A DNA stretch of 64,000 bases, from the sequence record MH383160.1; one strand, 5' to 3'. Below the pieces are notes generated by a model that saw only the letters and a program-made list of their open reading frames with translations, was not told the DNA's origin and ran no database searches. The position numbers and the translations under genes are program-made. Positions 10,836 through 21,358 of the stretch are shown here, piece after piece; within the stretch, counting starts at the first letter, position 1, and every line of letters starts with the position of its first letter.

Positions 10836-11459
10836 TTAACCTTTTAATTTCTTGAAAAAATCGTATATTTCAGAATCTAAATTATTTACTTTTTTAGATT
10901 CAGTGATTTTTTTAGAACTATTACAAGGTGATCCGTACTTACTCATCAGAGATTCAAATACCGCTGTTGGGTATGCTTCTGGAGCACTAGGTTGAGCAAC
11001 AATATCAATAGTGATAATTTCAAAATCAGAAACTATTCCATTATAATCAACGTTACCGGAACCGCGAGAACTTACACCAAGTTTTACACCAGCCTCTAGC
11101 ATTTTACGGATATTTTGACCATGTGCAGTATCAAGTAGTTTGATTTCTGCCATACCATTAGCACCTTCCATCCAAACCTTAGTAATCATTGCTGCTACTC
11201 GGTCTAGGTTAATAGTTAGTGTTTCTGGATGGTCACATTCAACAAGAATGCTTTCACCTTTAGCTAAACGCTGGTTCATGTTATTTACTGCCCTTGTAAT
11301 TTCAGATAAAGGGTAAATTCTCTCGTTCAAATTTCGTTGGTCGGCTTGAATAGCAATACCACGAAGATAGCAGTCACGCCCACCAAATCCATTATCACGA
11401 TGTTCCAAAACAACTTTAGAATCATTGAATGAAGACCATTCACGAATCATACTACTCAT
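10836..11459 (-). CDS. Prohead protease (gp21-like)
   Basis: NLNERIYP, ECDHP (catalytic His), GVSSRGSG (catalytic Ser), DIVAQPSAPEAY. Confidence 0.93.
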   Translation of the reverse strand: MSSMIREWSSFNDSKVVLEHRDNGFGGRDCYLRGIAIQADQRNLNERIYPLSEITRAVNNMNQRLAKGESILVECDHPETLTINLDRVAAMITKVWMEGANGMAEIKLLDTAHGQNIRKMLEAGVKLGVSSRGSGNVDYNGIVSDFEIITIDIVAQPSAPEAYPTAVFESLMSKYGSPCNSSKKITESKKVNNLDSEIYDFFKKLKG

Positions 11460-11479
11460 AATGATCTCCTTTCAGATAT

Positions 11480-12328
11480 TTATTTTAGTTTAGGTTGTGC
11501 TTTGCTTAGTGGTGATTTAGAATTAGATGCAGTAGTTTTTGGTGCTTTAACATCTTTCATTTCACCGCGAGCATTTTTACCAAGATCTAGACTATCTTTT
11601 GGTAGAACAGATTTATCATCTAGGTCTAGTAGTGGTGCTTGGTCAGTTTTCTTAGCGAATTTAACTGGCTCTGCTCCTGCTACTGGAGATTTAGCTTCTG
11701 GTGCTACTGGAGATTTGGAATGAGTGCCAGCTTTTTCTTTCTTATCAACTGGAGCAACTTTTTCTAGTTTGAAGGATTCACCGAATTTTTCATCACCGAA
11801 TTCAACATCAGCAAATTCGTCGTCACCGTCAACGCCAACTTCTTCTTCGCTATCTTCTACTTCTTCTTCAGAATCTAGATCAACTTCACCGTCACCGATT
11901 TCATCAAACATTTGTTGTAGGCCACGGAAAGCATCTTGGATTGATTCCCATTGGTCTTCGGAAGGAACATCAGCATCAGCTTTCACTTCAACGTCAACAT
12001 CGTCTTCACCGTCACCATCTGCATCAGCAGAGAATTCAACTTCTTCTTCTGCACTTTCATCTTCTTCACCAAGGGTGTATTCGATTTCAGCATTTAGACC
12101 TTCGTCTGGTTGTACATCAAAATCTTCGTCAAGCTTTTCTTCATCTTTGACTTTAACTTCGACTTCACAATCTTCATCGTCGTCTTCATCTTCCATGCTT
12201 TCTTCTAGTTGTTTGTTAATTTCTTGAGCTTGCTCAACGAAATACTTACGCATTTTTTTATCAGCAATATCTTGTTCGCCATTTGCAAACGCCGCAATTG
12301 CTTCTTGTAGTAGTTTTAAATTCGCCAT
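11480..12328 (-). CDS. Highly acidic prohead core protein (gp67/68-like position)
   Basis: The likely start is MANLK at 12328 (GGAGG RBS at 12334-12338). D/E-rich centre and basic tail; lies between portal and protease as T4 gp67/68 do. Confidence 0.6.
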   Translation of the reverse strand: MANLKLLQEAIAAFANGEQDIADKKMRKYFVEQAQEINKQLEESMEDEDDDEDCEVEVKVKDEEKLDEDFDVQPDEGLNAEIEYTLGEEDESAEEEVEFSADADGDGEDDVDVEVKADADVPSEDQWESIQDAFRGLQQMFDEIGDGEVDLDSEEEVEDSEEEVGVDGDDEFADVEFGDEKFGESFKLEKVAPVDKKEKAGTHSKSPVAPEAKSPVAGAEPVKFAKKTDQAPLLDLDDKSVLPKDSLDLGKNARGEMKDVKAPKTTASNSKSPLSKAQPKLK

Positions 12329-12429
12329 TATATCCTCCATAGATATATTACATTCGTATAAAGTATGATATTATTTAGTACTGAATAAAATCGCCTTTTT
12401 TAAAAGCTTTAAAAAGTGCGATTTTTGAT

Positions 12430-12657
12430 TTACATTAACCCAGAACCGTCACCAGTTGGTGCAGCGGCATAAACAACTGCAACCACATTTTTGCGGCGTT
12501 GTTCTTCATGTGCTTTAAATTCACGGTACTTTCTTAAGTTGTTTAATACTTGTAATGTTAGTTTCGGTTTTCTGGAATCAGTAATTTTATATACGTTCTG
12601 ATCATCTTCAGGGTCGTACATTGAATCACTGCTAGATTCAAAGATGTCCTTTAACAT
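12430..12657 (-). CDS. Small head-module protein (75 aa)
   Basis: Located in the head operon; SRKPKLTLQVLNNLRKYRE motif; late-like CATAAATA at 12722-12729. Confidence 0.65.
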   Translation of the reverse strand: MLKDIFESSSDSMYDPEDDQNVYKITDSRKPKLTLQVLNNLRKYREFKAHEEQRRKNVVAVVYAAAPTGDGSGLM

Positions 12658-12730
12658 TTGATCTCCTTGAAATATGCATTATAAATGAGGGTAAAAATAA
12701 ACCCTCATTCTTATACACTGTTATTTATGT

Positions 12731-14470
12731 TTAAAAAGAATTGCCTAAATTATTAGGGTTGAAACCACCACTTCCACTCTGTTGCTCTTGGTATTCGGCA
12801 TCAGCACTTTCCAAATTACCTTCTCCATCAATACCAAGATCCATTCCAGGATCATTTGGAGCATCAATACCAACAGACTGTAATCCAGCGGAATCTTCTT
12901 CACCACCAGAAGGTTGGGAACCATCTTGTGGATTCTCTTGTAACCACATTTGTTCATTCTTAACAATATCAGCTTTAGAAAAGCCCATTTTTTCAAGAAT
13001 TGTTTGTTTCGCCATATAAGGCAAGTCATTAAGAGGAAGATATGTATTAATTAGTTTAGCATCTAGTTCAGCTTTACGATAAGAAGCTAAGTTAATAGGT
13101 GGATTCATAATAACTTCAAAAGATGAAGTACTAATGTTATATCCATTTTTAACCATAAATCTTTTGAATTCAGCATCAAAATGTTTTGCAACTAAACGTT
13201 GATAACGCATACATTGATTATTGAATCGCAATTCACTTGCCATAGCTTGTGTAGCACCATCACCAAATAATGAAACACCACCATCATCTGGACCTTGTGG
13301 TAGATAAGAAGCTGGTATTTGAAGACCACGAATCAATTTATTATTAAAATAACGTAAGTCATCAATTTGTCCTAAGTTATCACCGCCTGGTAATGTTTGA
13401 ACATCTGAACCACGACCTTCAGAAGTTTGTGGGAAAAAGTAGTCTTCTAAAATGCTTAATGGATTATATGCTGCATCCATTAATGAAGTACTTCCACCTT
13501 TGTTTGAAGGTATTCTACGCTGGTGGATTTCATTTTTAAATCTTTCAACATAAGCCATCGCTTGGTGTGCTTGCATATCACCAACATCAATTTTAAATAC
13601 ACGACGCTCAGGTGCACGTTGTACACGATAAATTATGATACTATCTTCCAGAAGTTCTTTTTGCTTATAGACTTTAAATACGTCCTCAAGTATACTAGTA
13701 CCAAAAGGCCATACCCCATCTTGTCCTGTATTTAGCGTTAGATGAATTACGTGTTCTGCACCAACAGGAATAACGTCTAATTGACCGTTAGTACTGAATG
13801 GGTCAGCAGTATTTCCTTGACTTGTAAAACCAGATGCACCACCCGCAGCTACTGAACCACCGCCACCCATTGTTGTCGGAATAGCTCCTGGATAAGCGGT
13901 TTTATCAAATCCTACTTGAAGGTTACTAAAAACTTTATCTTTCAAATTTAATGATACGTCACGTATATAATAAATTACTGGTGTTTTACCAGTGGCTTCG
14001 TTAACAAATACTTGCTCAACATTTTTGGGGCTTACCCAATACCAATCGAATGTTTCTGGATCTCGAATGAAAAATTGATCACCATATTTCAGAAGACCAC
14101 GCACAATTTCATACATTCGTGTTTTAAAATCATTTTGTTCAGTCCATGCATCTAAACGATCTTCAATAGTCGTTACTTCAGTATCACCAATGTCATCTTT
14201 ATATTTGATTTTATATGGTAAACCAAAATCTTCAGTACTTTGGGTACAAAAGTCAGCAATTATATTCAATGCAGTTCTAATTTCAGGATCTTGGTCCATT
14301 TGCTCATACTGACTATAACGCTCAGTACGGTTTGCCAATCCATTATATACAACAGGAAGATAGGAAGCGAAATTTGTTTTCGTTCCTGTTGATTTATTGC
14401 TATTACTGGACTGATTTGGGATGGTCGATAGTTTAGACCTTCCCACTGTCATATGTCGTTTCCAACTCAT
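12731..14470 (-). CDS. Portal vertex protein (gp20-like)
   Basis: LEDSIIIYRVQRAPERRVFKIDVG, LEDYFFPQTSEGRGSDVQTLPGGDNLGQIDDLRYF. Confidence 0.95.
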   Translation of the reverse strand: MSWKRHMTVGRSKLSTIPNQSSNSNKSTGTKTNFASYLPVVYNGLANRTERYSQYEQMDQDPEIRTALNIIADFCTQSTEDFGLPYKIKYKDDIGDTEVTTIEDRLDAWTEQNDFKTRMYEIVRGLLKYGDQFFIRDPETFDWYWVSPKNVEQVFVNEATGKTPVIYYIRDVSLNLKDKVFSNLQVGFDKTAYPGAIPTTMGGGGSVAAGGASGFTSQGNTADPFSTNGQLDVIPVGAEHVIHLTLNTGQDGVWPFGTSILEDVFKVYKQKELLEDSIIIYRVQRAPERRVFKIDVGDMQAHQAMAYVERFKNEIHQRRIPSNKGGSTSLMDAAYNPLSILEDYFFPQTSEGRGSDVQTLPGGDNLGQIDDLRYFNNKLIRGLQIPASYLPQGPDDGGVSLFGDGATQAMASELRFNNQCMRYQRLVAKHFDAEFKRFMVKNGYNISTSSFEVIMNPPINLASYRKAELDAKLINTYLPLNDLPYMAKQTILEKMGFSKADIVKNEQMWLQENPQDGSQPSGGEEDSAGLQSVGIDAPNDPGMDLGIDGEGNLESADAEYQEQQSGSGGFNPNNLGNSF

Positions 14471-14481
14471 TATTTTCGTCC

Positions 14482-16686
14482 TTAACTGTTTCTCTCACCT
14501 TGAGTGTTTTCAGAGATAGTTCTTAGATAGTTATTTGTCTGTTGCACGGCAGATAGAGATTGCTCATTAACATCAGCAAGTTTTTTAAGTAACTCTTTCA
14601 TGTCTTCTGATATTGTGGCATTATTATTAGCATTTGCCATACTACTACCACTATTTATCATCGCTTTCATGGCCTCATAATCGTCCGGTTCAGCTTGAAT
14701 TGGTGGTTCATTTGGACCCCATGCTGATTTATCAAAAGTTTTTGGAGTTATGGTAACATATGGTGCAACATGTTCAGATTTTTCGATTCTCGCAGTTGCT
14801 CTTGGCTTATTTTCAAGACCACTACTAATAAGTTTTTCAGCAACTGATTCATCAAGGGGTTTTGGTTGTTTAAAGTTTCTACTTGAATTCCATTTTAAAA
14901 AACCATCAAATGAACTAGAAATATAATCACCAAATGAATTCATTTTTTCTTCAAAATAATTATTAACTTTTTCTGCACCATCGGTAACAGAATTGTTTTC
15001 TACTTTTACTTTGTCGTCTGATCCACCAAACCAACCTTTAACAGAATCCCAAAGTTTACCAGGAAGATCCATTAGGTTATTCATAAAGCTATCAAATGCT
15101 TCTGAAACTTTATTATATCCACTACCAAAAATTTCAGTACCTAACCCTTCTAACCACTGCTCAAACTCACCACCAATCCTATCCAAATACGCAACTGCAT
15201 CTTTCGCAATAGGAACCAAACCAAAACCATCAAGTGCTAACTCTCCGATAAATTCCCATGCACCATCAGTACGGTCTGCAATATCAGTAAGGTAATCCGC
15301 AATAGAATTTTGTGTATCTGCATACATTTTATTAAATGGTTCAGTAAATTCTTTACTAATCCATCTATTGAATCTATCAGTGAATTGTGTTAGTTTATCT
15401 GCTGGTTGACTCTTAGGATCATTAATCGCAGCTTCCATATCAAGTAGTTGTTGGTTGAAGGTTGCTGCCGTAGTGTTTCCTAATTGTATCTGATTTAATA
15501 AATCTTGCTTTATTAGTTCTTTGTTCTTTTTAACAAATTCCAATTGTTGACGGCGAATTTCTTGTGAATCAGTAACACCACTACGTACCAAGTTCTCACC
15601 TAAATCAGCAAATTGGTTCAGTACTGGAGTCAATAAATCATCTGGTACTCCACCAATAGTTAAACGATGTGAAATTAAACGTAGAAAATCTGCACCAGCA
15701 TCACCCATACTGGCAGCAGCTTCGTTAAATGCTTTTGATGTTGCAACTGCTGCTTTACTAGATAATCCAGAATAGTTTTGTAATGCGATTTGCATTGAAC
15801 GTGTGTCTAATGATTTATCTAAGTTTTGTGTTTTATTTAATAGTGCATCAACTGACTCACCCATACTTTTACTGAACTTAGTCATACTCATGATAAACTG
15901 TTCAGTACTTTTTGCTTGATCCATACTACGTAACATTTCTCTTCCACCAAATTGCTTTTGGAATTTAATATTACGTGCAGTTAAATCAGTTAATGTTTTT
16001 TGAGAAACACCATATAAACCTAATTGATTTTGTGCTTGTTGCACAGTACCCAATAATTTACCAAATGTAGAAACACCATCACCATATGCACCATCTAATT
16101 GTGCAACAACGGCACTATGAGTTTGTAATGCTTCACCAAATGCATCAATACTCATCATTGATGCACCAGCACCTTTTAATATGGAGCCGTAACCTTCAGA
16201 TAGAGCGACACCAGCACTGTTTATTCTATTATAAACTTCAAGCTGTGCATTTAACACATTATAAACTGCTAAACCAGCGTCAGCAACCAATTTGAATGCA
16301 GATGCTGCTGCACCAACTGGACCTGGGATCATTGCCAATGAACCAGCAAATGAAGATGCACTCATTCCTAGTGAGTTTACAACATTGCTAACGTTTGCAG
16401 ACGTACTCATCATAGTTTTGCCGACATTCGATACTTCAGATGATAATGATTTGAATATTTTTCCAAATTCTTTACCATCATCAGCTTTGTTATTTGTTCG
16501 AGAGCCACGGTTTCCAGTACTTGATGAATTACTTCCATTACGTTTTCCACTTTTAGAACCGGATTTCTTTCTATCATTTTTTATATTTTCAGCCAATAAC
16601 TCACGAATAGCACTCAAACTATCGTTGTTATCTTTAGTTTGATTAACCAACTGCTGGAGTAGGTAATCACTTGTATTTCCAGCCAT
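14482..16686 (-). CDS. Probable tape-measure / baseplate hub protein (gp29-like)
   Basis: 734-aa, largely helical, A/G/S-rich protein adjacent to gp26/gp51-like genes. The assignment rests on composition and context only. Confidence 0.45.
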   Translation of the reverse strand: MAGNTSDYLLQQLVNQTKDNNDSLSAIRELLAENIKNDRKKSGSKSGKRNGSNSSSTGNRGSRTNNKADDGKEFGKIFKSLSSEVSNVGKTMMSTSANVSNVVNSLGMSASSFAGSLAMIPGPVGAAASAFKLVADAGLAVYNVLNAQLEVYNRINSAGVALSEGYGSILKGAGASMMSIDAFGEALQTHSAVVAQLDGAYGDGVSTFGKLLGTVQQAQNQLGLYGVSQKTLTDLTARNIKFQKQFGGREMLRSMDQAKSTEQFIMSMTKFSKSMGESVDALLNKTQNLDKSLDTRSMQIALQNYSGLSSKAAVATSKAFNEAAASMGDAGADFLRLISHRLTIGGVPDDLLTPVLNQFADLGENLVRSGVTDSQEIRRQQLEFVKKNKELIKQDLLNQIQLGNTTAATFNQQLLDMEAAINDPKSQPADKLTQFTDRFNRWISKEFTEPFNKMYADTQNSIADYLTDIADRTDGAWEFIGELALDGFGLVPIAKDAVAYLDRIGGEFEQWLEGLGTEIFGSGYNKVSEAFDSFMNNLMDLPGKLWDSVKGWFGGSDDKVKVENNSVTDGAEKVNNYFEEKMNSFGDYISSSFDGFLKWNSSRNFKQPKPLDESVAEKLISSGLENKPRATARIEKSEHVAPYVTITPKTFDKSAWGPNEPPIQAEPDDYEAMKAMINSGSSMANANNNATISEDMKELLKKLADVNEQSLSAVQQTNNYLRTISENTQGERNS

Positions 16687-16774
16687 AACATTCCCTTTTA
16701 ATAGATGTATTATAGAAATATTTATGAAACTATAGAGAATATAAAAATTAGTTTAATTTAATCTTTTTTAGTCT

Positions 16775-16782
16775 TATAAATA
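16775..16782 (+). promoter_or_regulatory. Late promoter TATAAATA (gp26-like gene)
   Basis: Exact match; a divergent CATAAATA at 16719-16726 on the minus strand serves the 16686 gene. Confidence 0.75.
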
Positions 16783-16816
16783 CTAAAACACATTTATTAC
16801 ATGGAGATTTAATAAA

Positions 16817-17653
16817 ATGGCTATGAATCCACTTGCTAAGTACACTAAAATTGAAGAGATCAGTACTAAGTTAGTTACAAACGGCGTTATTCCTTATAAA
16901 GAAGGAGTTCTAGGTCCAAAAGGTGTCAAATGTGGAGTTTGTGCACGTAGTGCACGTGATGAAATGACACTTAATACCCCCGATATGTTACTAAACGGAG
17001 ATGCAGTATCCCGTGTTATTGAAAACTGTGTTCCTAATGTAATTGACGCTGATGAGTTGTATGTAAATGACGTTGAAATGCTTCTTATTGCTATTAAAGT
17101 TGCTTCTAAAGAAGAAACATATGATATTAACGTTGTATGTCCTGAATGTGAAAAAGAAGGTCGATTTGAACGTAATCTATCATATCTTCTTGAAACTGCA
17201 CAAGCATTTGAAGAAATCCCATCAATTGATTTAGATAATGGACTACGTTTAGAATTTAGACCACTGACATGGAAAGAATATTCATCGTTTGCTGAACGCA
17301 TGTTCAGTGAGCAGCAGAAGACTAAGTTTCTTGAAACTGCTGATATTGATAAAGATGAAAAAGTAAAAATATTTTCTGAAGTATTTGAAAACATGGCTCA
17401 ACTTAACTTCGATATGATTGGTGGAGTTATTGCAAAAATTATAACACCAGATGGTGATGAAGTAGTTGAAAAAGAATTTATTAATGAATGGCTTGGACAA
17501 CAATCGAAGGGAGTACTTAAACTAATTCGTGAAAAAATGGATGAAGTACTTGAAATTGGTGTATCTCATAGTATGGAAGTAGAATGTGATGGATGTAATC
17601 ATCAATGGGAAATTGATGGACTAAAATATGATCCTAGTCATTTTTTCGAGTAA
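16817..17653 (+). CDS. Baseplate hub assembly protein (gp26-like)
   Basis: MNPLAKY, RDEMTLNTPDMLLNG, DVEMLLIAIK...CPEC and a C-terminal CDGC...DPSHFF pattern. Confidence 0.8.
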   Translation: MAMNPLAKYTKIEEISTKLVTNGVIPYKEGVLGPKGVKCGVCARSARDEMTLNTPDMLLNGDAVSRVIENCVPNVIDADELYVNDVEMLLIAIKVASKEETYDINVVCPECEKEGRFERNLSYLLETAQAFEEIPSIDLDNGLRLEFRPLTWKEYSSFAERMFSEQQKTKFLETADIDKDEKVKIFSEVFENMAQLNFDMIGGVIAKIITPDGDEVVEKEFINEWLGQQSKGVLKLIREKMDEVLEIGVSHSMEVECDGCNHQWEIDGLKYDPSHFFE

Positions 17654-17862
17654 TGCTTCTCCAGTCATCTCCTGAAGAAATACAAGAAGTACTGAAGGAG
17701 ATAGAACTGAATAAGTCAGAAATCAAAAATGCACTAATGGAATGTTCTGTATATATGGATAACATTGACTATGGAACACTCCTTAATATGCCATTAATAG
17801 ATAGAGACTTATTAGTTAAGTCTTTTAATAAAAAAATTAAAAAACAAAACGAGAAGCACTAA
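17653..17862 (+). CDS. Baseplate hub assembly catalyst (gp51-like)
   Basis: Small ORF coupled to the gp26-like gene; YGTLLNMPLIDRDL resembles gp51-type motifs. Confidence 0.55.
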   Translation: MLLQSSPEEIQEVLKEIELNKSEIKNALMECSVYMDNIDYGTLLNMPLIDRDLLVKSFNKKIKKQNEKH

Positions 17863-17873
17863 TTTTCATATAG

Positions 17874-17901
17874 CCAGCACATTGTTGCTGGTTTTTTTTT
17901 T
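17874..17901 (+). terminator. Terminator after the gp26/gp51-like genes
   Basis: CCAGCA/TGCTGG stem followed by ten T. Confidence 0.8.
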
Positions 17902-18120
17902 GGTTTTAAACTACAGAATTATTTGAATTGAATTATGAAAGGATTAATTTTAATATTATTGGATTCATCTAACTCATTTCATTCGTTAGCTGAAGAATAT
18001 TCGTTACTACGTAACTCATATTCATTTAATTAAATTAATTATAAAGAACTTTAAAAGATTTAATACTTGACGGGATTTGTTGAGGACATTTTCATCCCCC
18101 CGCAGGGGAATGAAGACAAT

Positions 18121-18143
18121 AAAAAAGAGACAATGAAGTCTCT
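18121..18143 (-). terminator. Terminator closing the candidate ncRNA
   Basis: Minus strand reads AGAGAC-TTCATT-GTCTCT-TTTTT. Confidence 0.7.
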
Positions 18144-18575
18144 ATTTCTTGACGCTGATGGTTTCAGCATTTATTGTATTGCGAATTTCTTAAAAATATA
18201 TTAAGAACGAAAGCGGGTTGCTCTGTTTCTCTCTATCGCAGTCATGTGCAACGGTCGTCAGTCTTAATCATCCTGACACTCACCTGAAAGTCTATACAAT
18301 CAAACTTCAGGCTGTTTATTAAAATCACTTAATAAACTCCCTTAGCAAATCTGGTAAGGTGCGATCCTTATATGTCTATCTAGGAACTCTCTGTATGCTT
18401 ATCGGAGTTCTTTATTGAGCCGCATTGCCGTGAGGGGTTCAAACTATGCCCACATCTAACGGGTTTCTTTTGCTCATCGCACTGTTGAACTGCTCATCTG
18501 CCATCTACATTTTCGATAGGATCAGGTTCTAATTTATATGCATTTCTGCATTCAACAGGATTGTCATTATTACAA
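18121..18575 (-). ncRNA. Candidate structured non-coding RNA of about 455 nt, family unknown
   Basis: No ORF of 60 aa or more. Promoter at 18581-18609, terminator at 18121-18143. About 38-40% GC by hand count against about 21% in the flank. At least nine hairpins, most with G-U wobbles on the minus strand. Confidence 0.6.
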
Positions 18576-18580
18576 CAAAC

Positions 18581-18609
18581 ATTATAGCACAAACTTTAAA
18601 GTTGTCTCA
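18581..18609 (-). promoter_or_regulatory. Putative middle-class promoter TGAGACA-N16-TATAAT with extended -10 (TGC)
   Basis: Plus strand shows ATTATA at 18581-18586 and TGTCTCA at 18603-18609; points into the ORF-free structured region. Confidence 0.7.
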
Positions 18610-18662
18610 CTATTTTTATAAAAATATTCATTAAGTACTTAAAATATTGCAAATAACTAATC

Positions 18663-18670
18663 TATAAATA
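18663..18670 (+). promoter_or_regulatory. Late promoter TATAAATA (endonuclease VII gene)
   Basis: Exact match 30 bp upstream of ATG 18701. Confidence 0.75.
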
Positions 18671-18700
18671 TTTTGATAACAAATAGTTTGGTGAGGAATT

Positions 18701-19192
18701 ATGAAAAAAAGATTAAAAGATAGTAAGGATGCTGCAAACTATCGAAACGAATTGCTAAAGAAACAAAATGGAATAGATCCTATAATTAAAGAACCAATAA
18801 CTAAACCAGTACTGGATCACTACCACTATGGTAACCAACATTGTAGACAAGTTCTTCAAAATGAAGTCAATGCTTGGGAAGGAAAGGTACAAAACAGCTT
18901 CAATCGATATATGAAGCACTTAACTGATAAACCATTATATGAGGTACTCAGAAATCTTGCTGATTACTTAGAGCGTAATAACAGCATTCCTGACGATGAA
19001 CAAGTTATACATCACACTGCACTAACTGTGGATGTTAATAAGTTTAAAAGGCTTCCAGCAACACAGCAAACCGCGATTCTGGAAGGGTTAGGAGTTGTCC
19101 CTGGTAGTAACACTACTGCTCGTGTAAAGCAAGCTAGAAAGCTGATTAAGGACGGTAAATTAAATATGGTTGATATAAAAAAAGGGAGCTAA
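18701..19192 (+). CDS. Recombination/packaging endonuclease VII (T4 gp49-like)
   Basis: QNG...LDH.H...R.VL...N..EGK...FNR matches the T4 Endo VII layout, with catalytic D, H, N and E positions present. Confidence 0.8.
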   Translation: MKKRLKDSKDAANYRNELLKKQNGIDPIIKEPITKPVLDHYHYGNQHCRQVLQNEVNAWEGKVQNSFNRYMKHLTDKPLYEVLRNLADYLERNNSIPDDEQVIHHTALTVDVNKFKRLPATQQTAILEGLGVVPGSNTTARVKQARKLIKDGKLNMVDIKKGS

Positions 19193-19203
19193 GGCTCCCT
19201 TTA
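19177..19203. terminator. Bidirectional terminator between the converging endoVII and gp46 genes
   Basis: A run, GGGAGC-TAAG-GCTCCC, T run. Confidence 0.75.
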
Positions 19204-19210
19204 TCTTTAA

Positions 19211-21358
19211 TTAGAAAACATCGTCAAGGGTTGCATATTCAACAGTACTGAAACCGTCCTCTTTAACAACTTTGAGGATTTTTTCAGTCTTAGATAGTAA
19301 CTCTTCTCTGTGGGAAATAGCATAAACGTTCTTACCACGTACAGCAGCCATATCTTGGAAGATAGACCACACACGTAGAACACCACTTGAGTCAAGACCT
19401 TGGTCAATCATCTCATCAATAATAAGAATATTAATACTTTGGTATAATGACTCATATGTATCACGGAAAGCACAAGATAATGCGATGTTTACCCTTGTAC
19501 GCTCACCTCTACTAAGCTGTTTATAGTCAAAGTACTGTCCACTCTTCTCAATTTCAACACTCAAATCATTCAAAAACACAACATTATGCTCAGAACCGCA
19601 CATATCGATATAGTACTGAAGTCGTGTATTCAAATATGAGATATTTTGCTCAATAATACGTTTACGGACATAAGAATCCTTGTTTAAAAGTAATTTAACC
19701 AAGAAATCTTGGTGATTTGACATTTTATCAAGATTATTATAGTCGCTATAATCGATTGGTACTAAAGAATCAGTCTTCAGGGTATTAATTTGGCTAATAA
19801 ATGTGTTAGTAGTCTTCAATTCACGATCTAATTGCTGTGATAATGAATTTACAGTCATTTCTAACTCTTTAACTTCATATTTGTTTAATGTATCTGGAAC
19901 TTCCATTAGTTCATATGAGTTAAGTTCATCATATGATGACATAAGTTCATTTGCATAGATGTTTATTTGTTCTTCTTCACTCTTTCTGACCAATTCTTGA
20001 AGCTTATGTTCATGCATTTGTGCTTCTGAAAGTGTATTATAATATGTCACAGGCTTAGGTGGCATATCAAAAATCTCAATACTATCAATTTCTTGAAGTA
20101 ATGTTTCAATTTCAGAAGAAGAACTATCAATTTTAGCTTGAAGATCATTAATAGAACTTTGGATTTTGTCTTTAATTGAAGAAGTATGTTCGTTATGTTC
20201 TAATTCAGACATACAAAGTGGACATTTGCTGTTTTCAACTGTTGATAATTTGTCAATTTCAGCATTAATTGAACATTCATATCCTTTTAAAGCTATTTTT
20301 AGTGAGTTTAGTTTTTGTTCTTTGAAACGTTTTTGGTTATTATTCTCTTTTAGAATACCCTCTAACTGTTTCCATATCTCCAACTCATTATGATTTTCCA
20401 ATTCTGCACTAATATCAATAGTTTTTAGCTTATCAATGCTTAGATTTAATGCTCTTTTAGATCTTTCAAGTTCACGGTCATATGCATCAAATTTTAAAGC
20501 CAACTCTTGTACACGGCGTTCGATTTCCCCACGCTTTGCGTTATGAATAAGAGCTTTCTCTTTTATATCAGCAGCTTCATAGAGGTCATTAAAGTCTAAA
20601 GTTTTATATATATTCAACTCTTCATTTAACTTAGATACTCTATTATTTTTATCAATTTCAAACTGGTTTGCCTGTTCTTGTAGTGTCTCAATACTTTTTT
20701 GAATACGTTCATTACTTGCAGCTACAGTTTCATTTTTGAACTTTTCTTGTTCGGCTAAACGTTTAGTATCCTTATACATCTCCTTTAGCATTTCAGCTTT
20801 TTCCGTCAACTGTGTTATTCCAAGAAGTTCTTCTATCATATCACGTTGTTTTTGTGTGGATAAAGCTAAGAAAGGTTCAACGTTAGCATTCAGTACTACA
20901 ATATGTTCAAATAATAATTGAGATATTCCAAGAATTTCATTCAAATCTTCTTGTGTGTCTTTCTTTTCCCCTCTTGATTCATCTTCAATTTTATTATCTT
21001 TCCCTAAAGTGATAAAATTGAAATACGTGGGACTTCTCCCACGTTCAACAAGATATTGTACACCATCTTTTTCAAATTCTACAACTACTTCACAATTTTT
21101 ACCATTAGTTTTATTGACTAAGTTAGGAATTTTAATATCATTACCAATACTTTTCCCAAATAATCCAAAAACTAATCCTTGAATAATAGCACTTTTCCCG
21201 ACACCATTTCGACGTCCGGTGCTGTCACCACCTTCAATAACTGCATCATTATTTTGACCCAGTACTAATGAAATGTCAGAACCATTCAATTCAATTGATT
21301 GTGGTGCATTACCAAATGAAAAGAAGTTCCTCATAGATATACGTGTAATGTTTAGCAT
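19211..21358 (-). CDS. Recombination exonuclease ATPase subunit (T4 gp46 / SbcC / Rad50-like)
   Basis: Walker A NGVGKS, CPLC zinc hook, signature LSRGE, Walker B IIDEMID, H-loop ISH. Confidence 0.93.
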   Translation of the reverse strand: MLNITRISMRNFFSFGNAPQSIELNGSDISLVLGQNNDAVIEGGDSTGRRNGVGKSAIIQGLVFGLFGKSIGNDIKIPNLVNKTNGKNCEVVVEFEKDGVQYLVERGRSPTYFNFITLGKDNKIEDESRGEKKDTQEDLNEILGISQLLFEHIVVLNANVEPFLALSTQKQRDMIEELLGITQLTEKAEMLKEMYKDTKRLAEQEKFKNETVAASNERIQKSIETLQEQANQFEIDKNNRVSKLNEELNIYKTLDFNDLYEAADIKEKALIHNAKRGEIERRVQELALKFDAYDRELERSKRALNLSIDKLKTIDISAELENHNELEIWKQLEGILKENNNQKRFKEQKLNSLKIALKGYECSINAEIDKLSTVENSKCPLCMSELEHNEHTSSIKDKIQSSINDLQAKIDSSSSEIETLLQEIDSIEIFDMPPKPVTYYNTLSEAQMHEHKLQELVRKSEEEQINIYANELMSSYDELNSYELMEVPDTLNKYEVKELEMTVNSLSQQLDRELKTTNTFISQINTLKTDSLVPIDYSDYNNLDKMSNHQDFLVKLLLNKDSYVRKRIIEQNISYLNTRLQYYIDMCGSEHNVVFLNDLSVEIEKSGQYFDYKQLSRGERTRVNIALSCAFRDTYESLYQSINILIIDEMIDQGLDSSGVLRVWSIFQDMAAVRGKNVYAISHREELLSKTEKILKVVKEDGFSTVEYATLDDVF

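Follow-up and report, generated by a model that had tools for sequence, protein, structure and literature searches.

Large RNAs with many pseudoknots are rare; some of those known are central machines (RNase P, ribosomal RNA and self-splicing introns), and the others are puzzles of long standing (OLE, GOLLD and ROOL). ROOL and GOLLD are phage-encoded RNAs, 0.5-0.8 kb long and rich in pseudoknots, whose long-range loop pairings covary; they also occur in integrated bacterial elements, and neither a protein partner nor a function is known for them. Cryo-EM showed that one covarying 'tertiary' kissing loop of ROOL is in fact intermolecular (PMC12286853). RNA-seq of the Pseudomonas jumbo phage PA5oct, a distant relative of the RaK2-like phages, defined four ORF-free transcribed loci (ncRNA001-004), one of them 451 nt, and two ncRNA loci each give up to ~5% of phage reads (PMC7318152). 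The ColE1 RNA II and T4 origin transcripts are promoter-driven, ~0.5 kb in length, and have a G run near their 3' end, and the T4 origins occupy several loci per genome.

We analyzed a window of 64,000 nt from record MH383160.1, which belongs to Escherichia phage UB (Asteriusvirus, a RaK2-like jumbo phage). An RNA unit on its minus strand (18061-18575, UB copy 1) shares the traits given above for both ROOL and GOLLD, yet their covariance models match it neither in sequence nor in structure; the ROOL, GOLLD and OLE models found nothing in the window, in 17600-19000 or in eight homologous loci. It also differs from ROOL and GOLLD in residing in RaK2-like jumbo phages with Enterobacteria-type Gammaproteobacteria hosts, in being a family of four to five dispersed gene copies per genome, and in lying away from tRNA genes and arrays (the window contains no tRNA and none is close to a UB copy, the smallest distance being ~12 kb, from copy 4). 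No homology to the PA5oct region of 7-24 kb, which holds ncRNA001 and ncRNA002, was detected by nhmmer --max or by CM R1, a covariance model built on the three-way-junction core of the UB RNA that scores 100 bits at UB copy 1. This comparison leaves out ncRNA003 and ncRNA004, and the PA5oct ncRNAs further differ in having no reported structure or covariation. The UB RNA shares length, promoter and a G run with the ColE1 RNA II and T4 origin transcripts, but it has no consistent AT-rich unwinding region and its conserved tertiary fold is far more elaborate; unlike ColE1 RNA II, the family was not found on plasmids.

Known RNA classes did not account for the locus. Scanning the whole window with cmscan against Rfam 15 at gathering thresholds gave no match, and an E-value mode search of 17600-19000 and eight homologous loci returned only weak terminator-like sRNA matches. 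Neither ARAGORN nor Rfam reported a tRNA or tmRNA gene in the window. A group I or group II intron was rejected on the absence of an Rfam match and on the intact flanking genes. RNase P RNA is similar in size and in its pseudoknotted architecture, and ACGACCGUUGCA...ACAGAGCAACCCGC resembles the CR-II region of E. coli RNase P, a resemblance that no search supports. RNase P RNA was nevertheless rejected: no model matched at E <= 10 (17600-19000) or E <= 1 (homologous loci), the RNA alignment has no counterpart of CR-I/CR-V (P4), and blastn to 5,426 E. coli genomes misses rnpB. The same blastn search matched no host RNA gene and returned only two chromosomal island copies, and a mimic of a host RNA was rejected on this basis. 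We found no description of the RNA in the literature searched.

The features that define the unit and its promoter are as follows.

18061-18575, minus strand: conserved RNA unit of ~515 nt, from nhmmer and CM hits and alignments
18603-18608, minus strand: -35-like hexamer GAGACA, conserved across every paralogue and homologue, the chromosomal copy of E. coli among them
18581-18589, minus strand: extended -10 box TGCTATAAT; TGnTATAAT is invariant in the family alignment
18121-18143, minus strand: terminator-like hairpin AGAGAC-UUCAUU-GUCUCU with a U run, an optional insert within the conserved unit

The RNA is read from a generic phage sigma-70-type promoter with an extended -10; no expression data exist for any member of the family. 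At UB copy 1, GAGACA (18608-18603) is separated by a 16-nt spacer from TATAAT (18586-18581), with the TG at 18589-18588, and the RNA is predicted to start at ~18575 +/- 2. The family consensus of the -35-like hexamer is (T)GGGACA / GGAACA / GAGACA. Each copy of the RNA has its own promoter, of a type used across the whole phage genome. At the other end, conservation stops after the R2 motif (see below) and UAUUAA, and similarity between UB paralogues ends at ~18037-18060. The terminator-like hairpin, which spans 18143-18126 and is followed by the U run, lies upstream of this conserved tail. Most copies have such a hairpin, with differing stem sequences, and it is absent from UB copies 3 and 4, GAP32-type copies and others. 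Because most copies carry the hairpin upstream of the conserved tail, it is uncertain where the RNA truly ends and whether it has one 3' end or several. In copies without the hairpin, transcription would continue into the next gene, which after UB copy 3 starts 56 nt away.

The original prediction, made from sequence alone, had proposed an independent gene encoding a large and densely structured minus-strand phage ncRNA, possibly undescribed. This core claim was supported, because we found covariation, an excess of G-U over A-C, no Rfam match, no tRNA or tmRNA by ARAGORN, and no paper on the RNA. Its statement that the gap at 17863-18700 has no ORF of 60 aa or more held, as only ORFs of 32-45 aa are present and the longest is 45 aa. 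So did the contrast in GC content (proposed as ~38-40% against ~21%; 0.385 across 18121-18575 vs 0.212 across 17901-18060), the minus-strand promoter with an extended -10, which is sigma-70-type, and the view that the RNA is not a tRNA, tmRNA, RNase P RNA or group I intron. The RNA further proved to belong to a multi-copy family, which was out of the prediction's view, and its extent was corrected: the conserved unit is ~515 nt rather than ~455 nt and extends ~60 nt past the proposed terminator at 18121-18143, where a hairpin is seen, but as an optional insert that many copies lack and not as the end of the unit. The suggestion that the RNA is expressed with the replication genes remains untested, the promoter being merely of the generic phage type. 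Three proposed checks have been run: cmscan against Rfam (including GOLLD, ROOL, OLE, tmRNA and RNase P) gave no family match, conservation and covariation were both found in relatives, and the minus strand folded better than shuffled sequences.

In this last analysis, the minus strand folded at -115.6 kcal/mol (z = -3.54), and none of 100 shuffles was as good; the plus strand gave z = -1.84. RNAalifold on a structure alignment of 26 homologous sequences predicted 68 pairs, 45 of them with compensatory changes. Our structure model from the same alignment comprises 80 base pairs in 16 helices, four of which are pseudoknots. In this model 96.3% of cells pair, vs 37-45% when the partners are slid, and 56 pairs show compensatory changes, vs 15-21 in the slid controls; none of 500 shuffles reached the observed value. 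G-U outnumbers A-C by 168 to 13, which fixes the strand as minus, as the original prediction had inferred from G-U wobbles. The species under selection is the minus-strand transcript, and it keeps 16 helices surrounding long invariant single-stranded blocks. The elements upstream of the 3' region are listed below.

18551-18558, minus strand: P1 5' strand CUGUUGAA, paired with 18482-18488 in the PK1 hairpin loop; compensatory changes in 7/8 pairs
18538-18550, minus strand: P2 hairpin AUGCA-GAAA-UGCAU with a GNRA-type tetraloop (GAAA or another GNNA in most homologues read from the alignment); 4/4 pairs covary
18501-18520, minus strand: P3 hairpin CUAUC/GAUGG with the conserved, nearly invariant loop GAAAAUGUA; 5/5 pairs covary
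18479-18493, minus strand: PK1 hairpin, a 3-bp stem (18493-18491/18481-18479) closing the P1-pairing loop; 100% paired, the middle pair being UA in 11, CG in 9 and AU in 6 sequences
18416-18476, minus strand: P4 long-range helix UGAGC (18476-18472)/GCUCA (18420-18416), enclosing the blocks CCCGUUAG and CACGGCAAUGCGGC; 100% paired, 4/5 pairs covary
18339-18463, minus strand: candidate pseudoknot PK4, CCC(G)UUAG (18463-18456)/CUAAGGG (18345-18339); 95% paired, tentative
18384-18410, minus strand: P7 hairpin GAACUC/GAGUUC; 6/6 pairs covary
18355-18369, minus strand: P8 hairpin AAG/CUU; 2/3 pairs covary
18314-18337, minus strand: P9 hairpin GUUUAUUAAG-UGAU-UUUAAUAAAC, read from the UB letters in a variable-insert region
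18289-18306, minus strand: P10 inner stem (18306-18302/18293-18289) with a 6-nt loop, AUUGUA (18300-18295), that forms PK2; 100% paired, 4/5 pairs covary
18173-18178, minus strand: PK2 3' strand UACAAU, paired with the P10 loop (18300-18295); 99% paired, 5/6 pairs covary
18256-18278, minus strand: P11 hairpin GUCAG/CUGAC, helix 11 of the covariation model
18217-18252, minus strand: PK3, GUUGC (18252-18248)/GCAAC (18221-18217, in the P14 loop); 100% paired, 3/5 pairs covary
18180-18240, minus strand: three-way junction (P13-P15), the most conserved core; 97-100% paired, 11/14 pairs covary
18240-18236 with 18184-18180, minus strand: P13, UGCGA/UCGCA
18233-18229 with 18213-18209, minus strand: P14, GAGAG/CUUUC
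18206-18203 with 18191-18188, minus strand: P15, UCUU/AAGA

In three of these helices (PK1-P1, PK2 and PK3), a hairpin loop is paired with a distant strand. Covariation cannot separate intramolecular from intermolecular pairing, and this applies to all three of these loop-to-strand pairings. PK4 is tentative because it rests on a single compensatory change (UUUA/UAAA in RaK2), and a CCG/CGG pairing that competes with it is invariant. In place of P9, homologues have hairpin inserts of other lengths.

Eleven helices had been proposed originally; nine were confirmed, two of them as variable elements, two were replaced by covarying alternatives, and the four pseudoknots were added. Covariation across the 26 homologues confirmed CUGUUGAA/UUCAACAG, CUAUC/GAUGG, GAACUC/GAGUUC, UAAGG/CCUUA (P8), GUCAG/CUGAC, UUCUUAA/UUAAGAA and the inner part of CCUGAAGUUUG/UAGACUUUCAGG. 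The helix GUUUAUUAAG/UUUAAUAAAC exists but sits in a variable region, and AUGCUGA/UCAGCGU exists but its register shifts between homologues. The proposed GUUGCA/UGCGAU failed, as GUUGC covaries with GCAAC in a pseudoknot and UGCGA with UCGCA, and AGAGC/GCUUU failed in favor of GAGAG/CUUUC. A reported repeat of GAUGAGCA is lineage-specific in its second occurrence, the other homologues having AGUGCA at that place. We also considered a helix closing the 5' end onto a CAACAAAUC tail; it is seen in UB only, is not conserved (z ~0 in others) and was rejected.

Three further elements lie in the 3' region.

18148-18159, minus strand: R1 motif AUCAGCGUCAAG, on the 3' side of a small hairpin, GCUGA-AACCA-UCAGC (18168-18154)
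18091-18114, minus strand: G-rich hairpin UUCAUUCCCC-UGCG-GGGGGAUGAA, helix 16 of the covariation model
18066-18076, minus strand: R2 motif AUCCCGUCAAG, which repeats R1

In 36/37 sequences, R1 and R2 vary together; the RaK2-type form of the motif is CUUCAAG. We found no internal partner of, or complement to, the R1/R2 core within the RNA, and the window shows no enrichment of the motif or of its complement. In the G-rich hairpin, the 3' strand GGGGGGAUGAA is nearly invariant, while C/U changes in the 5' strand keep G-C or G-U pairs. A DRT2/Neo-type template ncRNA, in which an endless ORF would span R1-R2, was rejected: the R1-to-R2 length shows no modulo-3 preference (remainder 0 in 12, 1 in 9 and 2 in 16 sequences) and most units contain stop codons. 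No reverse transcriptase family was detected among the bacterial-locus proteins scanned against Pfam. A conserved leader peptide starting from GGGGGGAUGAAAAUG was likewise rejected, because one-nucleotide indels between homologues break the frame; this is the sole conserved AUG-led frame, and its disruption supports a non-coding RNA.

The UB genome contains four paralogues of the RNA, each encoded on the minus strand within a gap free of CDSs; the three other than copy 1 lie at ~98.5-99.1, 154.3-154.9 and 259.3-259.9 kb, and no further copy was found inside the window. Homologues are present in 69-72 RaK2-like phage records, at four to five places in each, in metagenomes, and in four enterobacterial chromosomes, where they reside inside integrative islands, one of these in E. 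coli LR-29-1. No homologue was found among 72,556 plasmids. In Munch, CBB and BF, the RNA keeps its syntenic place between the genes for endonuclease VII and the baseplate hub, as it does in a distant lineage with a portal protein of 57% identity. UB copy 1 is flanked by endonuclease VII and a 69-aa ORF, both intact and separately annotated. The four bacterial loci have no protein in common within flanks of ~4 kb (15 kb in E. coli) on each side, and searches of RaK2-like phages with two island proteins returned no homologue; a protein partner linked to the RNA in these islands was rejected on this basis. Two ParB/RepB-like genes adjoin the RNA in Serratia fonticola.

On balance, we lean towards reading 18575-18061 on the minus strand as an independent gene for a trans-acting, multi-pseudoknot ncRNA of ~0.5 kb and of a new class, a family with no described relative that is present in all RaK2-like jumbo phages covered by the search and, in rare cases, on enterobacterial integrative islands. 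Its covariation support is as strong as that for the large-RNA classes named above, yet it belongs to none of them. We infer that host RNA polymerase would make the RNA early and abundantly from its four to five gene copies; expression data are lacking, and we found no transcriptome of a RaK2-like enterobacterial phage in the literature searched, which counts against this reading. The RNA would act in trans through its fold, and not as an antisense RNA, mRNA or leader. Its most likely role may be that of a scaffold that binds or sequesters a partner, none having been identified, by means of its invariant core and of R1 and R2, the twin 3' motifs, which co-evolve as if a single factor read both. 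Alternatively or additionally, by analogy with ROOL and GOLLD, the RNA might assemble into oligomers. Candidate roles would include host takeover and anti-defence. Also counting against this reading are the uncertain 3' ends, the expected run-on into the next gene in copies without the hairpin, the absence of an identified partner and, in contrast to ROOL and GOLLD, the position away from tRNA genes. Moreover, host shut-off as the only role would be difficult to reconcile with a copy that is constitutive on a chromosome.

A bolder reading, which we would as soon doubt as accept, is that this RNA is the founding member of a new class of large ornate RNAs, with a complexity like that of GOLLD, ROOL, OLE and RNase P and a mechanism not yet known, kept in four to five copies by jumbo phages and captured by mobile islands, with R1/R2 as the read-out site. 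Its mechanism might be RNA-only assembly, a ribozyme, or a decoy that neutralizes a host system. If true, an orphan RNA of this kind would for the first time be available in hosts that are fully tractable genetically (E. coli, Klebsiella and Salmonella). A whole jumbo-phage clade keeps the RNA in multiple copies, including phage-therapy candidates against E. coli, Klebsiella and Salmonella, and these phages grow on laboratory E. coli, so the function of phage-encoded ornate RNAs would become directly testable.

Four rivals to the trans-acting ncRNA were weighed. It is unlikely that the copies are RNA-primed replication origins, each with a promoter and a structured pre-primer RNA like ColE1 RNA II or the T4 oriF/oriG transcripts; a lasting R-loop would arise from the G-rich 3' part and be processed by RNase H to a primer, and the four to five copies would be the multiple origins of a jumbo genome. 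In its favor are the dispersed, co-oriented copies (four to five per genome), the length of ~0.5 kb and an invariant G6 run near the 3' end that recall RNA II (the RNA II features compared here are reportedly from Masukata and Tomizawa 1990), the 21% GC stretch after copy 1, a phage-encoded RNase H, and the ParB/RepB-like gene pair beside the RNA in S. fonticola. Against it, the AT-rich stretch follows only one of the four UB copies (29-33% GC downstream of the others) and is not common to the paralogues, the plasmid search returned nothing, no antisense-RNA or iteron features were seen, and four pseudoknots with long invariant single strands far exceed the known needs of a primer.

Similarly doubtful is a self-processing or catalytic RNA, in which cleavage or ligation would take place at R1 and R2, both read by one internal or external guide, and the 50-87-nt R1-R2 segment would be released or circularized. 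This possibility is compatible with the trans-acting ncRNA. The concerted change of R1 and R2, a pseudoknotted core with invariant junction nucleotides typical of ribozymes, and a phage-encoded RNA ligase and polynucleotide kinase/phosphatase speak for it; against it, Rfam ribozyme models gave no match, no internal complement to the R core was found, and there are no experimental data.

We consider a cis-acting element very unlikely. Such a giant leader or processive antiterminator, like the HK022 put RNA, would modify its own polymerase so that it reads through the embedded terminator into downstream genes. The position directly downstream of a promoter, the intrinsic-terminator-like hairpin inside the conserved unit, its absence from UB copies 3 and 4, and a same-strand gene closely after UB copy 3, the RaK2 copy and BF copy B are consistent with this view; at UB copy 4, the nearest same-strand CDS is ~170 nt away, beyond an opposite-strand CDS. 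Against it, a convergent gene lies opposite copy 1 and opposite each of its syntenic orthologues (CBB, BF and Munch), which leaves nothing downstream to regulate, and copy 1, since it converges on its neighbor, cannot be a leader. Moreover, downstream genes differ among paralogues, neighbors of the bacterial copies are unrelated, and the RNA is ~7x the size of the put RNA.

Lastly, a repeat acting only at the DNA level (as a hotspot for recombination, an array bound by protein or a miniature mobile element), or else several clustered small-peptide genes, for which a dispersed repeat of ~600 bp that is also on mobile islands and the short CDSs annotated over it might speak, is all but excluded by compensatory changes that keep Watson-Crick/G-U pairs on one strand only (G-U 168, A-C 13), a promoter at every copy, unit ends without terminal inverted repeats or target-site duplications, and ORFs of <=45 aa whose frames are broken by one-nucleotide indels.

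We also noted that, in some copies, a terminator-like hairpin comes directly after the -10 box, which counts against the trans-acting ncRNA. Several GenBank records annotate short CDSs ('hypothetical proteins') over the RNA, and these spurious entries could be corrected.

The 838-bp gap at 17863-18700 is 100% identical, at the same coordinates, to Escherichia phage UB (MH383160.1, Asteriusvirus PBECO4), a RaK2-like jumbo phage of 353 kb. Its neighbours are:

end 17862, plus strand: 69-aa ORF and baseplate hub gene (left)
start 18701, plus strand: DNA endonuclease VII (right)

The original prediction placed a minus-strand structured RNA of about 455 nt in this gap (18121-18575). Its description was accurate, since all checks agreed. 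There is no ORF of 60 aa or more (the longest has 45 aa). A minus-strand promoter is present (GAGACA, a 16-nt spacer and TATAAT with TG ahead of it, 18608-18581), as is a hairpin of terminator type (18143-18126, then a U run), which is not the end of the conserved unit. GC content is 0.385 in 18121-18575 versus 0.212 in 17901-18060. Folding of the minus-strand RNA yields -115.6 kcal/mol, and none of 100 dinucleotide shuffles did as well (z = -3.54, versus -1.84 for the plus strand), so the outcome that would have refuted the prediction, folding no better than such shuffles, was not obtained.

A blastn search of 50,697 phage records found the region in 69-72 genomes, every one a RaK2-like jumbo phage, with hosts in Escherichia, Klebsiella, Salmonella, Erwinia, Yersinia, Serratia, Cronobacter, Pectobacterium and Xanthomonas. 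Each carrier has it at 4-5 separate places, with identity down to 67-76% for non-coding DNA. A profile search of the whole UB genome returned exactly four copies, all in CDS-free gaps; a covariance model of the 3' core (CM R1) returned the same four and no others in UB:

18622-18000, minus strand: copy in the window
99143-98548, minus strand: UB copy
154911-154316, minus strand: UB copy
259852-259326, minus strand: UB copy

The window's copy is syntenic in phages Munch, CBB and BF, between endonuclease VII and the hub gene, and also in a lineage from metagenomes in which identity drops to 57% for the portal protein and 40% for the hub protein. With further copies from pattern scans of IMG/VR and metagenomes, the total reached 56 distinct sequences. 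Several GenBank records (PQ390715, PQ330092, PP886230, OR699282 and others) place two to four short CDSs ('hypothetical protein') over the RNA gene; these calls are almost certainly spurious. By CM R1, no RNA copy lies in the CDS-free stretches of 1-4 kb at 211.3-215.6, 140.96-142.2 and 183.8-184.9 kb of MH383160.1 (L003-L005, outside the window).

We next aligned 26 sequences of at most 96% mutual identity (alignment A2). For these, RNAalifold gave 68 pairs, of which 45 show compensatory changes. Pseudoknots PK1-PK3 were added by a scan for stacked covarying columns; PK4 was spotted by eye, then counted, and is tentative. The final model has 16 helices and 80 pairs. Standard pairs fill 96.3% of its cells, versus 37-45% when partners were slid by 1-3 columns; 56 pairs changed on both sides (versus 15-21), with 356 compensatory cells (versus 31-53), and 0 of 500 shuffles reached the observed values. 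No pair is broken in the long-range helices P4, P13, P14, PK1, PK3 and the inner stem of P10. Three hairpin loops each pair near-completely with a distant strand:

PK1, minus strand: PK1 hairpin loop with the 5' strand of P1
PK2, minus strand: P10 loop with 18178-18173
PK3, minus strand: P14 loop with GUUGC

In ROOL, a large ornate phage RNA, covarying 'tertiary' loop pairings proved intermolecular (PMC12286853). Model pairs include 168 G-U versus 13 A-C; therefore the selected molecule is the minus-strand RNA. Long invariant blocks, for example GAUAGAGAGAAACAGAGCAACCCGCUUUCG, CACGGCAAUGCGGC and CUAAGGGAG, lie between helices, the loop GAAAAUGUA is also invariant, and a GNRA tetraloop closes P2 in most cases, as is typical when an RNA adopts a defined tertiary fold. 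Collectively, these results show that strong selection on structure acts on this family of genes, which encodes a large pseudoknotted RNA. The core claim of a real, large structured phage ncRNA thus held, on stronger grounds than could be known from sequence alone. Nine of the eleven helices originally drawn also held; GUUGCA/UGCGAU was replaced by GUUGC/GCAAC and UGCGA/UCGCA, and AGAGC/GCUUU by GAGAG/CUUUC. The duplicated GAUGAGCA is present, but peculiar to the lineage of the window's copy (A2). A modular hairpin that includes GUACAAnnAnAGAUCCGUC was also noted; it is inserted optionally at two different RNA positions across many homologues (A2 columns ~345-395 and 530-565; e.g. L009, L036, L011), and the window's copy lacks it.

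The predicted 3' end at the terminator does not bound the conserved unit: similarity among paralogues and orthologues runs on to 18061 through three further elements, the last repeating a motif (R1) just ahead of the terminator-like hairpin:

18159-18148, minus strand: R1 motif AUCAGCGUCAAG
18114-18091, minus strand: G-rich hairpin UUCAUUCCCC-UGCG-GGGGGAUGAA
minus strand, conserved beyond the terminator-like hairpin: block AAAUGUCCUCAACAA
18076-18066, minus strand: R2 motif AUCCCGUCAAG

The terminator-like hairpin occurs in most copies with differing stem sequences and is missing from UB copies 3 and 4, GAP32-type copies and others. It is thus optional within a longer conserved unit, and the RNA may therefore occur in forms of ~455 and ~515 nt. 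R1 and R2 vary in concert within one RNA in 36 of 37 sequences; shared variants are CGUCAAG, CGUCAG, an ACC prefix replacing AUC, ACG..CUUCAAG (RaK2), CGACAA (Serratia sp. 2723) and ACGAAG (divergent clade). No complementary partner of the motif was found inside the RNA, the motif is not enriched in the window, and the R1-to-R2 length shows no modulo 3 preference. As the simplest reading, we infer a single external factor that recognises both.

Full-length copies, promoter included, were found in 2 of 5,426 complete E. coli genomes (blastn; nhmmer E = 2.6e-143), within an integrase-bounded island that adjoins ffs and also carries candidate defence genes PDC-M45 (DuOB, DUF488, mSLOG-DUF4326). 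In E. coli LR-29-1 (L076, NZ_AP027515.1, locus coordinates ~10958-21302) the RNA gene shares the island with an IS3-split tyrosine integrase, a ParB-like protein and a resolvase. Three more carriers, Serratia fonticola, Serratia sp. 2723 and an Enterobacteriaceae MAG, came from a scan of 185,579 species genomes; in each, the copy adjoins a large serine recombinase, ParB/RepB-like genes or a CI-like repressor. No protein is common to the four bacterial loci over the flanks compared (about 4 kb per side, 15 kb in E. coli), neither of the two E. coli island proteins tested has a homologue in RaK2-like phages, and the E. coli copy falls inside the phage 'locus 1' clade (support 100/98) with both Serratia copies basal; the RNA therefore travels on its own, with no protein gene linked to it.

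Neither the window nor its homologues matched a family in Rfam 15. No tRNA or tmRNA was detected, and the gene is not adjacent to tRNA genes. Blastn against the 5,426 E. coli genomes revealed no similarity to an E. coli RNA gene. Nor was homology found to ncRNA001 or ncRNA002 of the Pseudomonas jumbo phage PA5oct. The literature searched holds no description of it; fragments may be among the 10,006 candidate viral RNAs catalogued in 2023 (PMC10690425), in a paper whose text does not discuss the RNA. We regard this large structured phage RNA as a new class, its function still open.

We infer that the RNA acts in trans via its fold, because copy 1 (the window's) converges on its neighbour with nothing downstream to regulate, the paralogues' neighbours are unrelated, and the RNA moves onto islands alone. 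If it is expressed early and abundantly from its several gene copies, this would suit a stoichiometric role. The RNA might bind or sequester a partner or, by analogy with what ROOL and GOLLD build, form an RNA assembly. Speculatively, anti-defence or benefit to the element fits better than host killing, because phages and other mobile elements carry the RNA. That the copies are replication-origin primers has some appeal (copy number, co-orientation, a G6 run, a phage RNase H) but is unlikely: an AT-rich stretch follows only one of the four UB copies and is not part of the repeat, and none of 72,556 plasmids searched carries the element.

The promoter belongs to the common type of phage UB, (T)GGGACA-N14-TGnTATAAT, found genome-wide (window and L002-L007). 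Of 107 TGnTATAAT sites in UB, 86 are on the minus strand, many sites lying directly ahead of annotated protein-coding genes. Host sigma-70 polymerase would be expected to read such an extended -10 promoter. In UB copy 3 (L003 42877-42830) and GAP32-type copies (L067, L068, L056), a terminator-like hairpin and U run directly follow the -10 box, at the extreme 5' end of the predicted RNA; this might terminate the upstream gene or protect the RNA as a 5' stem-loop.

Other features of the flanking DNA were as follows:

17901-18060: AT-rich spacer (21% GC) downstream of the RNA, not common to the other UB paralogues, with direct repeats TGAATATGAGTTA (18024-18012) and TGAAATGAGTTA (17981-17970), and TAACGAAT twice
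17872-17893, plus strand: strong terminator after the 69-aa ORF, AGCCAGCA...TGCTGGT then T10
19181-19202, both strands: 9-bp hairpin scored as terminator-like, between endonuclease VII and a gp46-like gene
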